From assembly GCA_011109175.1 (NCBI GenBank), contig RDEW01000021.1:683295-747294 (forward strand): DNA of 64,000 bases, read 5' to 3'. Shown piece by piece: positions 20,093 to 41,883 of this stretch. The DNA comes from Dicyema japonicum (lineage: Eukaryota; Animalia; Dicyemida). The first letter of the stretch is position 1; each line of letters begins with the position of its first letter. The notes under the pieces are model-generated. The model did not search any database. It saw only the letters and a program-made list of their open reading frames with translations, and was not told where the DNA came from. A program made the position numbers and the translations under genes.

Positions 20093-22100
20093 TTAATTAA
20101 ATCTGTCCAATGGATTATTATACACAATTGGTTCAAATTTCTTTTCAGGGAGAGTCCCCCCTCTCTGAGACTTTGATTCACGAACAGCCTCGATCTTCCT
20201 GGATTCCTTGACCAATAACTTCCTCTTATAAACTCCAACACTCCCAGACTTCCTCTTGGCCTTCTTTTTCGGCTCAAAAGCACGGGAATTGTCAACCACC
20301 TTATAATAATATCACAATTCAACATCTTTGACGGTCAATGACTTCTCAGGGACCTTATCAACGGTCCCCAACAGGGAATTGTCCATACTAATCAACTCTG
20401 GTTGTATTTTGTCTAACAACATCCTTACTTCCGTGTTTTGCCTCTGCTTTTTCGTCCTGAAAGGGTTAGACTCCAAAGCATCAATATTGGGTTCACCAGC
20501 ACCTACAATAATATCACCATCTACCAGGGACAATAATACTACTGACTCCCCCGTCATAACCAACACCAACAACGTCCTCAAAAGGACAAAACATCACATT
20601 CTGGATGAATGAGTCAAATCTCTCAGTAAGGTACGCCTTTGGGCGGGATTCCATCACTGACTGAGAACAGAGTCCCTCGAATATCTGAAAATAAACACTT
20701 CTGTGGACAACCTCCAACACATTACCACCAGATAATGCCATAAGTCCTCTCTGAGAGAACTTCACATTCTGTTTTCCCCCATGAGTCTGCCTAAAGTTAC
20801 TGAGTGGTTGATAGTTCATCCTGAGGTCCCATATTCTGACCATAGAGTCTGCCCCAACAGAAGACAAGTACCTAAAATAAATTGAAAGCAAACCCCCCGT
20901 CCTGACTCACGGCAATAGATTGAACAGCGGATCCATGACAGAGCATCTTCATCAGGGGATCCTTCTGAGAAGGGGACCACATACTGACTGATCCATTAGG
21001 GTGACCCAACAGAATCACGGCGTTTGATGGATCCTGAGTCATAACATCAATCCGTCCCTGTCTCGTAGGAAAGGCAGAGACAATTTTCCCCACGGAAACG
21101 TCTAAATACGACAGAAATCCCGTGCTGCTCTAAAATCAAGATAAAATCAAAAACCAACCGCCGCGACCAGTAGAAAGTGGTAAGGAAGGAATTCTAGTTT
21201 CTGTACTCTGTCCAGGGATTTCAGACAGTGGAGTTCAAGTCCCTGGTTGTCATATATAAAGGTCCACTGTCTCTGAGCCACCGCCAACATGGTCTCTACG
21301 TGAAGATAACTTGTATATGACCGTTACTATACCAGATGTCATTGACTGACTCCATGACGTTGAATTCTGAAGAGAGCTGCTTGTCCTGCCACTTCATCAT
21401 AGCCACGTGGCCCCTTCGTCCAGATAAAGCCATGTATTGGCCATTTCTGGTGTATTTCACTGAGTATGGCCCAAATTGACGTAAATAAAGGTGAAAATAC
21501 TGAAATATAACTGAAAGGCACCTTTTGGGAGGTATTAATGGCTGAACTATCAACAATGTCTTGCTGTTTGATCCTAAAGTACTCTTCACCCTCTTCCAAC
21601 TCAATGAATCTGTATAAATCAAAGGAGAAACCCAGGCCGCTCTGTGAGGAGAGACTCTGCCTTTGCTGATTGCGACTCGGCGAATTTGGCTCGGTTTTCT
21701 CTCTCAATAAGGCGGGAGGTGAACCGTTTGGATTTGAATCGCAACTAGAGATCAAAATTTAACTCAAATTTTGCGCTAAGAGTTTAAATCTTACAGATTC
21801 CATTTCTAATCCACGGCGATACTTTTCTAGCTTTTCTAGAGGGGCACTGTATTCGACGTTATTTGGATTCTAAGAATAGGACTATATAATTTTACTTTTT
21901 TAGTTGACTTGGGGTTTTTCTGTGTGAAATAGGGATTTTCTTGTGTTAAGAACCTCACTGATTTGTTACTTTTGTAAGCTAAGAATAGGACTATATAATT
22001 TTACTTTTTTAGTTGACTTGGGGTTTTTCTGTGTGAAATAGGGATTTTCTTGTGTTAAGAACCTCACTGATTTGTTACTTTTGTAAGTCTGTGTAGACAT
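20093..22100 (-). CDS. WDR46: WD repeat protein 46 (Utp7/BING4), SSU processome
   Basis: [98 protein letters not shown]-terminal PLDRF. ATG at 22100; the first exon/intron is affected by a 109-bp duplication. Confidence 0.92.
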
Positions 22101-22197: not shown

Positions 22198-24117
22198 AAC
22201 ACAAAAAAGATTTGGTAATGTTGCAGTTTAGTGAGCTATATTTTTTTTCGAGAAAATAAGAAATAATAAAATAAATAATTATATTATTAATTATATCAGC
22301 ATATTTAGAGTAACTTTCTCTTTTATATTTAAATAATAATAACATGGTGCGACCTGGTTGCGAGAGCATTATTCCACAAGAAGAAATAATGAGTCGTGCT
22401 GCTATTCAAGTCGAACGACTCTTCCTGTTGAGGCTTCTGATGAGTACACAGAGTCTGGAGGAATGCATAAAGTGGTGTGCAGCACGGCGTTTGATAAGGA
22501 ACACAATTTACTGCAGACTGTGCAAGGTTATATTTGAAATTGTGTAATAAATAGATTTATTGTTACTTTTTTGTGTTGAATCTAGTGGTCGATAAACATG
22601 CATGGAAATGCAAAAACTGTAAGAAAAGGACGAGCATCGAAAGAACATCTCGTTTGCGAAGTAGCTTTTGAACTCGAAATATCCAAGACAACTGTTGTGG
22701 ACTGGAATAACTTTTGTCGAGAAACATGCGAGACATGGTTTGAGACAGTTCCACAGTTGCTTGGTGGACTTGAAAANNNNNNNNNNNNNNNNNNNNNNNN
22801 NNNNNNNNNNNNNNNNNNNNNNNNNNNNNNNNNNNNNNNNNNNNNNNNNNNNNNNNNNNNNNNNNNNNNNNNNNNNNNNNNNNNNNNNNNNNNNNNNTCT
22901 GGAGGAATGCATAAAGTGGTGTGCAGCACGGCGTTTGATAAAGAACACAATTTACTGCAGATCGTGCAAGGTTATATTTGAAAATGTGTAATAATTAGAT
23001 TTATTGTTACTTTTTTGTGTTGAATCTAGTGGTCGATAAACATGTATGGAATTGCAAAAAGTGTTAGAAAAGGACGAGCATCAGAAATCACCCATGGTTT
23101 GAAGGTGGTGCAACTTTGTTAATTTTTCAGGTAGTTATCTAAGTCTTAGAACAATTCTGGAGCTAACGTGTATGTGGGCGAAAGAACATCTCGTTTGCGA
23201 AGTAGCTTTCGAATTTGAAATGTTCAAGAAAACTGTTGTGGACTGGAATAACTTTTGTCAAGAAACATGCGAGACATGATTCGAGACAGTCCCACAGTTG
23301 CTTGGTGGACTTGAAAATCAATCGTTTAAATTTATTTTGCTAATTAATAGAATCAAAAGTCGTGGAAATTGACGAGTCTAAATTCTTCCACTGCAAATAC
23401 CATCGCGGTCAATAGCGGGAAGGTCATTGGGTCCTTGGAGGAATCGAGCGCGGAACAGAGCGCTGATTTCTCGAAGAGGTTCAAGATAGGTTTATTTAAA
23501 AACATTGAACATTGTAGATCAACGGAAACCTTGAAAGATGTGATTACAACACAAATTCTTCATGGGACGAGAATTATAACCGATGGATGACTGGCATATA
23601 AGTCAATCCCACAATGGGATGACGGTATATACAGTCATTTTTGGGTGAATCACTCTCAAATTTTTGTTGATCTCGCCAATCCAAATGTCCACACGCAGTC
23701 CATCGAGAATCTATGGCAGCGTGCTAAAAGAAAAAGTCGTAAACAATATGGTATAAATTTGATTCTAATTGCATAAAGGAACATCAAATTAATTATTCAC
23801 GTGTTATCTTTATGAATATATCTGGAGAAATTCACTGAGGGAGTTGCAGAACGCAATAGATCGACATCGAGTTTTCTCTGAGTTTTTGGCGCTTTTTGGT
23901 GACATTTATTAGTGTGTGTCTTTCTTAAAATAGTGATGTTTTTTTTATAAATTTTTTAATTATAAAAAAAATATAAAAGAGAAAGTTACTCTAAATATGC
24001 TGATATAATTAATAATATAATTATTTATTTTATTAATTCTTATTTTCTCGAAAAAATATAGCTCATTAAACTGCAACATTCCCATATATTTATTTTTTGT
24101 TTAGGTGGGGACGTGCC
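22198..24117 (+). mobile_element. Merlin (IS1016/IS1595-like DDE) DNA transposon with long TIRs, degenerate
   Basis: CRLCK..WKCKNC zinc motif, WNNFCRE, VEIDESKF, WVLGGIERG, ILHGTRIITDG, VNHS..FVD..HTQSIENLWQRAK, YLYEYIWR. 22201-22330 is the reverse complement of ~23971-24110; the right end begins GGCACGTCCCCACC (minus). Confidence 0.93.
22777..22897. other. Assembly gap inside Merlin, flanked by duplicated sequence
   Basis: N run; 22458-22776 recurs at 22898-23313, where the second copy has ~95 extra bp. Confidence 0.98.
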
Positions 24118-24199: not shown

Positions 24200-24575
24200 T
24201 CAATGAATATTCTTAATTCAAGATAGCGACTTTTTGTCACACCCTACGAATGGACAGACTCGCTCCACCTAACGTCGCGATGAAAAACTATTTTTCACAA
24301 TCAGAAGGAGCAATCCGTGGATGGCCCAGTGCTTCCTTGCCTAAGGAATTAATCTATCTGGAATAAACAAAAAGTAGAGAAGACTTTGACTCTTTACGAG
24401 GAACAACAACGGGGGTGATTGGAAGAGGATGAGTAGAATGATACTGAACGTGGCACAAGGAAAGCTTAATTAATTGGAGAAGACTTTGACTCTTTACGAG
24501 GAACAACAACGGGGGTGATTGGAAGAGGATGAGTAGAATGATACTGAACGTGGCACAAGGAAAGCTTAATTAATT
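24200..24575 (+). mobile_element. RTE 3' fragment with 100-bp tandem duplication
   Basis: LRMDRLAPPNVAMKNYF..RGWPSASLPK, related to 76-946; duplicated unit 24377/24477. Confidence 0.65.
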
Positions 24576-38130: not shown

Positions 38131-39035
38131 CGTCCTTTACTACGCCCATCATGTTTCTTGACGACCAGAAGACGAGTCACCTCTTCTAATGTCTGGGTCT
38201 ACTTACTAGTTCTATTCATAACCAAATATACCTGTCGGATTTCTGGGAGTGTCCGTTCTTGGCTGTAACGTTTTTGTTAGCCACCTATTTTTTCACTTGA
38301 AAGTATGGGAAATAAATAAAGTTGTAATAAACATGTCTCAGGTGCCAGTGTGATGCAATGAAGCATATCCAATCTACTGGAGAAATTTCCATAAGACTTG
38401 ATGTTTTTCCCTGCCTCTAGATGAACTTGATGTTGTAAGGTATTTGCTTCTTTGACCGTGTGAACTGGATACAATTAGTTGTTAACTATTAACAGTGTAT
38501 CGAGGGTTAATAAATGTATTAATTAATAACAATGTTGATGTGCTATATTACACCAACTATGCGCTTCATGGTGGTTTTAGATCTTCATTTGAGTAGACAT
38601 AAAAAACCCTTTGGAATAAACAAGCCAAAGATTAAAGAAAGGGAAATATAATTTAAAACCTTAAGCTTCCAAGTTCAGTTTATTTAATGGGAAAATGTTA
38701 TAAGATGTACTTTCAAACTAATCGAGATAATCCTAATACAATTTTCATACTAATTTAGGATAGAACTGTACGAACATTACAGTGTTCCAAATATCACCTG
38801 AGTCCTGGCTTTTCTTCATCACCCCCTGCTTTGAGAATTCTCAAGTACTTGTATGTGTAGAAAAACTGTGTTTTACTCCGTTAACCTTCAATCCTTTCCT
38901 CAACGTCGTTTCAGACTTTCCGTATTAGTAGGGAACCGGAAATATTAAATTTTTTTAAATAGCAAAAATAATTTTTTTTTATTTCGAATATAAAATTAAA
39001 AAAATAATAACTATAAAATTTTATTTATTATCTGC

Positions 39036-41419
39036 TGTAGTAGAAAAATACTTCCTCCATAGAATGTCACCGGTTGTTAAGGGAACCCGGTCAATAAAGG
39101 AACTTTGTAAAAAATTAATTTGGTATTTATATGATCATATAAAGGAAGTTTTCGACTGTTATTGTTCGAATCCACGTCTTCTCTCTAAAAAACAAATCCG
39201 TAACTACGATATCGTATTCGTTCCATTTTCTCCTCTGTAAAAAATTAATTTGGTATTTATATGATCATATAAAGGAAGTTTTCGACTGTTATTGTTCGAA
39301 TCCACGTCTTCTCTCTAAAAAACAAATCCGTAACTACGATATCTTATTCGTTCCATTTTCTCCGCTGATTCATTAATGTTTTTCTAGCACATTCTCACAA
39401 GATTTTCTATATTCGCTGCCTTTTAACTCCAAAAATTCGGAAATGTCAGTTCCATCTTTTTCTTCATACCTTCTAATTCATCTTCATTTGGTTGTTTAAA
39501 ATTAAAATTCATAAAAATTTCAAAATGTCTATGTTTTGTAGTGGAATGTGACGATCTATTATAGTCATATGTAATTCGTTTAACAATTTTGCTGTTATTA
39601 TTATTTATTAACCCCGGATACACCGAGAAAGAAGTTAAAGTAAACAACTAATTAAGTGTATCCAGTTTCCACTTCTACAGAAACAGAGTCCATCCGGAAT
39701 CAGCATAAAGGGTAAGACGTCCATTACATGCAGTTGTGGAAACCCCTCCAGTGGAATGGGGAAGAGCAAATAATCCTTTTTCATGCCAGCCTGGCACTGG
39801 GCGTCACCTAGACAGGTGGATCACATGACGCCACTCTATTAGGAAGAGAGGAGGAACAGACAAGCAAGCAGAAAATTTAAACCAATTAACCACGCAGCAC
39901 CACATGGCGCCACGCGGCAAATCAGTGAGTCAATTTTTTTGCTGTAATTTCCGAAGGTCACGTTCGACGCACTTGTGGATGATAGCCAATTTTTAATAGA
40001 TTGATTATTCCTGAGAAATTTCAAATAATTAATTGTTACCGTTCTACTTGTCTCTGTATTCAAGGTGCTCTAGGCCTTCCGTATATATGCCTGATATTGA
40101 AATAATCGCATAATTCGGACATAAAAAAATTGTTGAATTCTTNAGAGAGAGGAAGAACAGACAAGCAAGCAGAAAATTTAAGCCAATTACCACGCAGCAC
40201 CACATGGCGCCACGCGGCAAATCAGTGAATCAATTCTTTTTTTGCTGTAATTGCCAAAGGTCCCGTTCGACGCACTTGTGGATGATAGCCAATTTTTGAT
40301 AGATTTATTATACCTGAGAAATTTCAAATAATTAATTGTTACCGCTCTACCTGTCCCTGTATCCAAAGTGCTCTAGGCCTTCCACATATATGCCTGATAT
40401 TGAAATAATCACATAATTCGGGCATAAAAAATTGTTGAATTCTTTACCGTTGTCGGTTTGTAAAACAACTGGTGGGTCAATGATGTAAAAAAGTGTTTTT
40501 AAAGCGAGTAGATATTTCTTTTCCGGTCTTAGTGAACGTTTATTCAACCCCAGCATATTTTGAAAAAGAGTCAATTATCAAAAGAACCTAAAGCTAGAGA
40601 AGAAAAAACACATGACTTTGAATCATTCAAATCAGCGTATCGCCTAAAATCTATAAGATCGGCTATGCAACGATCTCTTGGAGCACGTGCAACAATAGTC
40701 GTAATTAGTGGTTTTGTAGCCATTAAACGTTTAGACTAAAAATACAATAATTAATATACTTACGAAACATACATTTTTTAGGATCTGCTCTACTTCCTCA
40801 GTCTTGATGCCATAAATGATATCTCCTATAATATCAAACATTCTGTCTCGTATAAAATAGTTTTGAAGGTGTTAATTCTAACAATTATGATTAATTAGCA
40901 AACTTCAATAATTGTTAGCTTTAATTCGGCTTCTTCAATGTAGAAAAATAGCAGACTATTTTTTGATAAATAAAAGTTTTATCTGCAGTAAATTGAAAAA
41001 AAATCCGCATGTTGCCTGATTAGAAATCTTTCTTTATTGTTACTGGCTTGTGGTAACACATCAGATTCTTTAAAAGATTTAATTTTTGATAACTCCTCTT
41101 TAGAAAGTGTCACAAAACGTATTTTACACGCTAGATTTAATTATTAGAAATCTTTCTTTATTGTTACTGGCTTGTGGTAACACATCAGATTCTTTAAAAG
41201 ATTTAATTTTTGATAACTCCTCCTTAGAAAGTGTCACAAAACGTATTTTACACGCTAGATTTAATTAATTAATTTTTACACTTATATATTAAAATTTTAA
41301 ATGTTTTTTGATTTTATAATGGAAATTAATATTTATTAATAATTTCAATTTAAAAATATGTTCGGGGTTCCTTTATAAACCGGGTTCCCTTAACAATTGA
41401 TGACGTAGAATAATCTACA
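39036..41419 (-). mobile_element. Ginger/KRBA2-like integrase DNA transposon with imperfect TIRs, intron-containing, degenerate
   Basis: Spliced: RDRMFDII..EEVEQILKNVC (H2C2-like), PRDRCIADLIDF..VLLIIDSFSKYA, LQTDNGKEFNN, IRHICGRPRALWIQGQVER, NQSIKNWL, ITYDYNRSSHSTTKHRHFEIF. Inverted repeats ttgttaagggaacccggtcaataaaggaac (~39075-39103) and reverse complement of ~41368-41398; both ends can be drawn from TGTAG. Confidence 0.85.
39593..39918 (-). mobile_element. ~320 bp SINE-like retroposon inserted in the integrase gene
   Basis: Starts GCCGCGTGGCGCCATGTGG (A-box-like) and ends ggtgtatccggggtt plus a TAA-rich tail; same boundaries as 56701-57027. Confidence 0.7.
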
Positions 41420-41883
41420 GGTTCTGTTTTAAAATTAATTCTATCACTTAAATAATTAGCAGCAATAGTAAACTTTCAACATTGTCGAGCATAGTACGTT
41501 TTTTTCGCTAAAATAAATACTTAAGTGGCCAACTTATATTTCACACTAAATAGATGTTTTTTGAATCAAATTTCCTTTATAATCAATACTGTCTTATGGT
41601 AATCAATTATACAAAAATAAATTTACGACTAAGACGTTGCCTCCCTAATAGAGACATTAGTGGAAGAACTCCAGTATGAAATACATGTTTGAATAATGGA
41701 AATTATGACATAAAAATTAAAGGAAAATTAATTTTATTTTGAAAAAAACATCATTCCTAAGGTCATGCATAAACCATCCTGACTTAGTGGCTATTCCCTC
41801 TAAGGATGGCGAGCGAGACTCACTCAAATAGCCAGCAGGGCTCACGGAGATCTCCTGTGCGTGTAGAAATCGATTCTCTAGAC

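Follow-up and report, generated by a model that had tools for sequence, protein, structure and literature searches.

How a cut-and-paste DNA transposon could come to carry a set of spliceosomal introns is the question raised by a 64,000-nt stretch of the Dicyema japonicum genome (hereafter the window; assembly GCA_011109175.1, contig RDEW01000021.1, positions 683,295 to 747,294, corresponding to scaffold C113:683295-747294 of the set searched), in which the transposase gene of a Merlin element is broken up by five segments of 26-28 nt. The initial annotation had read 22527-23778 as a single gene with four to five introns that had been gained or miniaturised to match the host. Comparison of the window with the whole genome (67,542,437 bases, 377 scaffolds) and with outside relatives gives a probability of roughly 85% that the five segments represent bona fide host-type spliceosomal introns of the founder of the element's family, here termed family A. 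The interest lies in the comparison between Merlin families of this genome and not in the window copy, which is a pseudogene, an ordinary dead transposon.

Merlin elements form a superfamily reportedly described by Feschotte in 2004. Their defining features are a DDE_Tnp_IS1595 domain, terminal inverted repeats (TIRs) with terminal GG and target site duplications (TSDs) of 8-9 bp (PMC8101967). The window element is a decayed copy of such a cut-and-paste transposon of D. japonicum (~1.37 kb), as the initial annotation had recognised: exon 5 (23516-23749) aligns with positions 61-133 of the PF12762 (DDE_Tnp_IS1595) profile, scoring 29.2 bits where the cut-off is 27, the family TIRs of ~125 bp start with 5'-GG (terminus read as GGTAATGTT, GGTAATGTTGCAG), and TSDs of 8-9 bp occur in the family, L002 (on C101; 1371 bp) bearing the perfect 8-bp TSD AAAATAAT on both sides (8/8) and L008 a 9-bp TSD with 8/9 positions matching. 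The Pfam scans were run on single window exons, most of which were too short or broken to score, and among these exon 5 alone reaches the PF12762 profile; the exon 5 piece of L013 gave 21.3 bits at profile positions 62-89. An N-terminal CxxC..CxxC pattern, typical of the superfamily like the length of ~1.4 kb and the product of ~330 aa, is present and split by intron 1, while zinc-finger profiles on single exons returned weak zf-BED matches (E 0.004-0.012) and no PF12760 match. Family A occupies at least ~30 loci in the genome with 77-93% identity to the window copy, and L002, with deletions in exons 4 and 5, is the only full-length copy recovered. The parts of the window copy are as follows, the introns and catalytic residues being predicted ones.

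22214..22340, + strand: 5' TIR, starting GGTAATGTTGCAGTTTAGTGAGC, 89-94% complementary to 23959-24083
22344..22526, + strand: exon 1 of a left partial copy, ATG to CRLCK, 61 stop-free codons, 83% amino acid identity to the intact exon 1 of L030
22527..22554, + strand: intron 1 of the left partial copy, 28 nt, GT..AG, phase 0
22555..22776, + strand: rest of the left partial copy up to the gap, exons 2 and 3 being fused where 97 nt with intron 2 are deleted
22777..22897, no strand: assembly gap of 121 N, whose flanks duplicate each other
22898..22970, + strand: 3' part of exon 1 of the right copy, 95% identical to 22454-22526
22971..22998, + strand: intron 1 of the right copy, 28 nt, GT..AG, phase 0, found in 5/6 spanning copies at 27-28 nt
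22999..23104, + strand: exon 2, second half of a putative zinc ribbon, reading VVDKHVWNCKKC, a stop (23065) and KRTSIRNHPWFE
23105..23130, + strand: intron 2, 26 nt, GT..AG, phase 1; 24-27 nt in 8 spanning copies, GT 8/8, AG 6/8
23131..23323, + strand: exon 3, 193 nt against 195 nt in other copies through a 2-nt deletion, stop at 23277
23324..23350, + strand: intron 3, 27 nt, GT..AG, phase 1 in the family, with an in-frame TAA; 27 nt in all 7 spanning copies
23351..23489, + strand: exon 4, VVEIDESKFF..., first catalytic D placed at 23371-23373, stops at 23413 and 23464
23490..23517, + strand: intron 4, 28 nt, GT..AG, phase 2; 27-28 nt in 13 spanning copies, GT and AG 13/13
23518..23750, + strand: exon 5, DDE_Tnp_IS1595, second D placed at 23582-23584 and E at 23705-23707, stop at 23588
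23751..23778, + strand: intron 5, 28 nt, GT..AG, phase 1; 28 nt in all 5 spanning copies
23779..23912, + strand: exon 6 to the stop codon, reading TSN, a stop (23790), LFTCYLYEYIWRN...GDIY and the final stop
23959..24083, - strand: 3' TIR, from inverted-repeat comparison and location of the terminus

Three of the segments had been placed exactly by the initial annotation, and its junction readings hold as well: removal of 23105-23130 joins WFE-G/SYLSLRTILEL (the slash marking the junction), that of 23490-23517 joins EVQD-R/STETL, with a predicted nucleotide junction from ...GTTCAAGATAG to ATCGACGG, and that of 23751-23778 joins KQY-G/TSN, a stop and LFTCYLYEYIWR, all three segments running from GT to AG. 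The two candidates that it had rated as weaker, 22527-22554 and 23324-23350, have the same termini and are upheld by the homologs and the other copies. Removal of intron 1 restores the C-x2-C..C-x2-C spacing of intronless homologs, which is CxxC-x19-CxxC in P0013 and in L031, an uninterrupted Merlin element of the same genome. Removal of intron 3 leaves the frame of the window copy broken because in this copy alone 2 nt are missing from exon 3 immediately upstream; the other seven copies read cttgaCRaaaayaatc/GT at the donor, two bases more than the window, and with these restored the frame fits and the reading across intron 3 becomes ...DENN-Q-PKVVEIDES. Introns 1, 2, 4 and 5 shift the frame and intron 3 holds the in-frame TAA, so that all five would have needed removal for a transposase to be made. 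The GC content is 22% in the introns and 40% in the exons, and strings resembling branch points (CTAAT, TTAAT, GTAAT or TGAAC) were recognised by eye 5-12 nt before the AG of the five introns.

The span 22527-23778 as a whole did not hold as one gene, real as its segments are, since it crosses the assembly gap and 22527-22554 lies in the left partial copy. Positions 22454-22638 are repeated at 22898-23082 (95%) and 22638-22776 at 23179-23317 (93%), with offsets of 444 and 541 whose difference of 97 nt corresponds to the stretch including intron 2 that the left copy lacks (direct repeats, blastn). The left flank reaches the end of exon 3 at the gap, and beyond the gap the right flank is back in mid-exon 1 and has its own intron 1 equivalent (22971-22998). 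Because the flanks duplicate rather than continue each other, 22527-22554 belongs to a different partial copy from the other four candidates, and no reading frame can run through the gap. In L002, a full copy free of gaps, the duplicated segment occurs once. The published assembly (67.5 Mb, 377 scaffolds) has a heterozygosity of 1.24% and was built with SSPACE scaffolding, GapCloser and HaploMerger (PMC6736024); the two versions in the window differ by 5-7%, well above that heterozygosity, which makes a join of two paralogous copies the likeliest origin. The duplication around the gap is thus most likely a scaffolding or gap-closing artefact, and an old tandem duplication is the less likely explanation.

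The segments are a property of the family. Every family A copy that spans a site carries the segment there (6, 8, 7, 13 and 5 other copies examined for introns 1-5), with GT kept in 38/39 and AG in 35/39 instances and lengths varying by one or two bases. Among the family A copies spanning the sites none shows a precise absence of any segment, let alone the intact continuous reading frame that the initial annotation had named as the sign of a false reading; the sole short instance, found in L030 at intron 1, comes from a larger and imprecise deletion. As all spanning copies carry them, the segments predate the amplification of the family and are not products of decay in the window copy.

The boundaries of the segments also coincide with points at which uninterrupted homologs run on without a gap. 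The spliced model was compared with homologs exon by exon. In a tblastn comparison of L031 with the window, residues 230-274 end at 23490 (58% identity in exon 4), residues 274-355 resume at 23516 and residues 350-366 resume at 23778, and the homolog residues are consecutive across introns 4 and 5 in L031 as in P0003 and P0004. Stop-free exon pieces from better-preserved family A copies were mapped on P0013 (328 aa), in which the junction of exons 1 and 2 falls between residues 64 and 65, exons 2 and 3 meet at residues 99 and 101 around split codon 100, exons 4 and 5 at 211 and 213 around split codon 212, and exons 5 and 6 at 289 and 291 around split codon 290; at intron 3, which falls in a variable linker, the offset is at most 1 residue. 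All five junctions thus show an offset of 0-1 residue against L031, P0003, P0004 and P0013. The founder exons of 183, 106, 195, 139, 233 and 134 nt sum to 990 nt or ~329 codons, compared with 328-331 residues in P0013 and P0003. The chance of finding five frame-restoring GT..AG segments of such size at alignment breakpoints was estimated at ~1e-8 to 1e-13. A search for the longest chain of open reading frames (ORFs) by dynamic programming, in which GT..AG segments of 18-45 nt were allowed, was dropped as intron evidence, since shuffled sequence also gave chains of 85-230 codons; applied to 38900-41600 of the window, it likewise yielded nothing beyond the shuffled level.

That the five segments were actually spliced is what we infer from these alignments. 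The transposase gene of the family A founder would then have had six exons and five GT-AG micro-introns of 28, 26, 27, 28 and 28 nt in phases 0, 1, 1, 2 and 1, the host spliceosome would have removed all five from the mRNA before a transposase with a putative zinc ribbon and a DDE domain was made, and the introns would have travelled with the element, as cut-and-paste transposition copies DNA. The splicing-based control of transposition put forward in the initial annotation is speculation.

The segments might instead be random small insertions in a decaying pseudogene that were never spliced, family A being a non-autonomous passenger of another family's transposase. This explanation we consider highly improbable. 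It agrees with the fact that all family A copies are broken, and ~448-bp derivatives resembling miniature inverted-repeat transposable elements (MITEs; L013, L016) indicate that mobilisation in trans happened within the family. However, the segment positions are identical in all copies and hence older than the amplification, all segments are AT-rich GT..AG stretches of 26-28 nt exactly at gapless breakpoints (chance ~1e-8 or less), the TIRs of family B, which alone among the Merlins found looks intact, are unrelated to those of family A, and three insertions shared by the subfamilies of family C keep GT..AG and size while their interiors are scrambled (see below).

As introns, the segments look like those of the host. 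Dicyemid introns measure 26.2 +/- 1.9 nt in cloned genes (PMC2222250) and have a median of 27 nt, with two thirds below 30 nt (PMC6543705); among animals similarly short introns are known from myxozoans only, those of dicyemids being the shortest or near-shortest (PMC13644364). The host genes of D. japonicum have 6.2 introns per 1155-bp coding sequence (~5.4 per kb) and a mean exon of 198 nt (PMC6736024), and family A with 5.05 introns per kb and a mean exon of 165 nt has a similar density. Three host actin introns measured here, of 22, 23 and 22 nt, start with GTTTTA, GTTAAA and GTTTAA, and the transposon introns of 26-28 nt are somewhat longer.

L073:1440-1540 and L077 (G000:C323:1197500-1197930): host actin introns (GTTTTACTATTTTTAATATTAG and similar)

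Both kinds share GT..AG ends, a length of 22-30 nt in the host descriptions (PMC2222250, PMC6543705, PMC13644364), AT-richness and starts of the GTTTA/GTTAA type. Their histories appear to differ: the host introns are shrunken ancestral introns at conserved, ancient positions (PMC2222250), a view also ascribed to Ogino 2010 as far as that work is cited in PMC6543705, whereas the transposon introns are without counterpart in close relatives and look newly gained.

At least four Merlin lineages inhabit the genome (PF12762 scan followed by tblastn). Family B comprises L031, L039 (96%) and the more diverged L032 and L034, and is uninterrupted.

L031:1205-2745 (G000:C313), - strand, ORF 1417-2601: apparently intact family B element with an uninterrupted 394-aa ORF, PF12762 71 bits

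The TIRs of L031 (107 bp, 95-100% identity, starting GGGCGATATCGTG) are unrelated to those of family A, which argues against mobilisation of family A by the family B enzyme, a possibility that was considered and set aside. Within the L031 ORF itself 62 residues are duplicated around a single X (one N); here, as in the window, the duplication flanks a gap.

Family C consists of the subfamilies C1 (L033, L042), C2 (L046, L047, L050, L054, L081, L083, L084) and C3 (L043), and has predicted introns of its own in the regions and at the positions given here.

L033:1400-1960 (-), L046:1165-1722 (-), L047:1451-2000 (+) and L043:1640-2020 (+): intron regions of family C
Intron Ca, after D-x-W-K: 32 nt in C1, 31 nt in C2, 26 nt in C3
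Intron Cb, between VNH(K/R) and RNF: 30 nt in C1, 30 nt in C2, 23 nt in C3
Intron Cd, between SYF-x-x and EF-x-W: 28 nt in C1, 28 nt in C2, 26 nt in C3

The positions of Ca, Cb and Cd are common to all three subfamilies, and the introns are GT..AG in the best-preserved copy of each, some decayed copies lacking the donor. Their interiors are unalignable between subfamilies, and the flanking exons align at 65-82%; this is the pattern that real introns should leave when they are kept while active lineages diverge. A fourth predicted intron, Cc (31 nt, GAG AG/GT..AG/A ATG), occurs in 7/7 C2 copies, the donor reading GT in three, GC in two and AT in two, and is precisely absent in L033 (GAG AGG ATG TGG) and L043 (GAA CGA ATG TGG), one copy each for C1 and C3. 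Cc is, as far as these alignments tell, an intron presence/absence difference within one family. Where family A has intron 4, family C has none and reads FLEMVPDRSKRTLTAAI unbroken, and in the DDE domain the two families have no intron position in common. Family A thus counts five introns and the young family B none; family C has three shared ones and one confined to a subfamily. In family D (L035-L037, L051, L052), L036:1349-1745 (G000:C21) shows a break of ~30 residues with a frame change right after VVEIDES, which could be another family-specific intron or plain decay.

Outside the genome, a word search with the L031 ORF found six proteins, among them P0003, which lies as a single 331-aa ORF on metagenome contigs of 1.25-1.5 kb that represent whole Merlin-sized elements. 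An alignment of exon 5 fragments was discarded because MAFFT misplaced the non-overlapping pieces, and a single 53-residue piece of window exon 5 was searched instead; this HMMER search gave 187 matches, the best of them at 50-60% identity. In exon 4 the closest relative is P0013, a PF12762-bearing protein encoded by a continuous ORF on a 3.6-kb metagenome contig, with 79% identity to the intact L013 version of the exon, followed by P0070 (78%), which comes from the snail Batillaria attramentaria (hypothetical protein KAG5692728.1), family B reaching 61% in the same exon. P0003, P0004, P0013, P0036 and family B are single ORFs, uninterrupted at all five intron positions of family A. Dicyemids inhabit cephalopod molluscs, and with a snail relative at hand Merlin may conceivably have been exchanged between the lineages of host and parasite.

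The comparison with Merlin elements of other origin, by which the initial annotation had proposed to separate gain from shrinkage, therefore favours gain. The reasons are that neither the closest relatives nor family B have interruptions, that no intron site is common to families A and C, and that the bacterial IS1595/IS1016 relatives of Merlin are without introns (PMC8101967); on these alignments, the introns were most likely acquired after the lineage of family A had split from its intronless relatives. The gains probably took place inside the dicyemid genome, as intron size and composition match those of the host. Of the earlier suggestion that introns were gained or miniaturised to match the host, the host-like size thus stands and gain is the favoured reading, and miniaturisation is less supported, the relatives being intronless at all five sites. 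The observation, also made there, that retroelements of the window show no introns says little, since they copy through RNA and the lack is expected.

It is unlikely, by our estimate, that the introns are instead ancestral to the Merlin lineage, were once longer and shrank to ~27 nt together with those of the host, the intronless relatives having lost theirs. Such a history would parallel that of the host introns (PMC2222250), and a single event mediated by cDNA, such as one through a reverse-transcribed copy, can strip a gene of all its introns at once; moreover, the relatives come from collections that call genes as continuous ORFs, a bias that hides intron-bearing kin. Yet none of the close relatives sampled has an interruption at any of the five positions, families A and C have no common intron position in the DDE domain, the bacterial IS1595/IS1016 relatives are intronless (PMC8101967), and one intron of family C is confined to a single subfamily.

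Several points weigh against the main reading, that of gained and spliced introns in family A. Besides the bias towards continuous ORFs just mentioned, the snail relative P0070 was compared as a protein, and the polarity of gain and loss was judged by parsimony, with bacterial IS1595, which has no introns, as the outgroup. None of the ~30 loci holds an intact family A copy, so function is not demonstrable for any living element, and family A appears extinct; the right copy in the window has the in-exon stops listed above besides the 2-nt deletion near the 3' end of exon 3, through which the frame at intron 3 is lost. Among 1.84 billion representative proteins, a set from which records of this genome may be missing, part of exon 5 as the query gave no match above ~60% identity, so that a product of family A, whether spliced or not, is absent from them. 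The TSD of the window copy matches at only 6/8 positions, and those of L013 and L016 are without clear match.

Taking gain as the starting point, it may tentatively be proposed, at rather less than even odds, that Merlin entered the dicyemid genome intronless and then repeatedly gained introns of 23-32 nt at family-specific sites, until there was about one per 165-200 nt. A neutral ratchet would be sufficient to explain such a build-up: with a spliceosome that accepts GT..AG segments of ~25 nt, a small frameshifting insertion could be rescued by splicing, and without an RNA step in a cut-and-paste element the gained introns would not be purged. Selection for splicing-dependent expression is an alternative.

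The origin of new spliceosomal introns is a long-open question, and clear recent gains in animals are rare. The host introns of Dicyema, old and shrunken, tell nothing about intron births; what the Merlin families add is an outgroup of close relatives without introns, several lineages that share the genome yet differ in their introns, many dated copies, and one intron of a single subfamily whose site is precisely empty in two others. If repeated gain is true, it would imply either an active process of de novo formation of minimal introns or selection for host-like transposase genes, which might for instance depend on splicing for their expression or escape silencing, and the elements would form a dated succession of intron births in an animal's recent past. 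Should splicing be confirmed, the families would offer a test of the minimal sequence that suffices as an intron, and of the neutral ratchet against selected gain.

The transposase genes of the P element and Ac contain introns. Introns in the transposase genes of other DNA transposons are also known from CACTA elements, in which exon-intron structure turns over (PMC4158355). Family A resembles these in that its transposase mRNA would need host splicing, and the Dicyema Merlins resemble them in that exon-intron structure differs between related families by gain or loss (PMC4158355). Unlike the CACTA-type cases, the introns lie at the lower size limit of animals (23-32 nt) in a superfamily usually described as intronless, and three co-resident families differ, with five introns, three to four elsewhere, and none. 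DDE transposons are commonly described with an intronless transposase gene (bioRxiv 10.1101/2021.09.26.461848), and the words intron and exon are absent from a 2021 Merlin survey (PMC8101967). In contrast to the single ORFs of the other Merlins recovered, family A has five introns at host-like density. Like introners (PMC9860276, PMC12130899), these elements tie transposons to intron gain; unlike introners, the direction is reversed, the introns arising inside the transposon's own gene, and the five introns are without evident mutual similarity, TIRs or TSDs, as judged by eye on very short sequences. No paper on intron-bearing dicyemid transposons was found in the literature. What is new here is the uninterrupted family B, the intron-differing family C and the continuous-ORF outside relatives standing beside family A.

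The MITE-like derivatives of family A (~448 bp; L013:1340-1787, L016:1323-1771) exist in several copies (L013-L017) and retain, along with the two TIRs, intron 4 and parts of exons 4 and 5. In the window, tandem duplications flank the element on either side, 21862-22079 (2 x 109 nt, 97%) upstream and 24372-24571 (2 x 100 nt, 98%) downstream.

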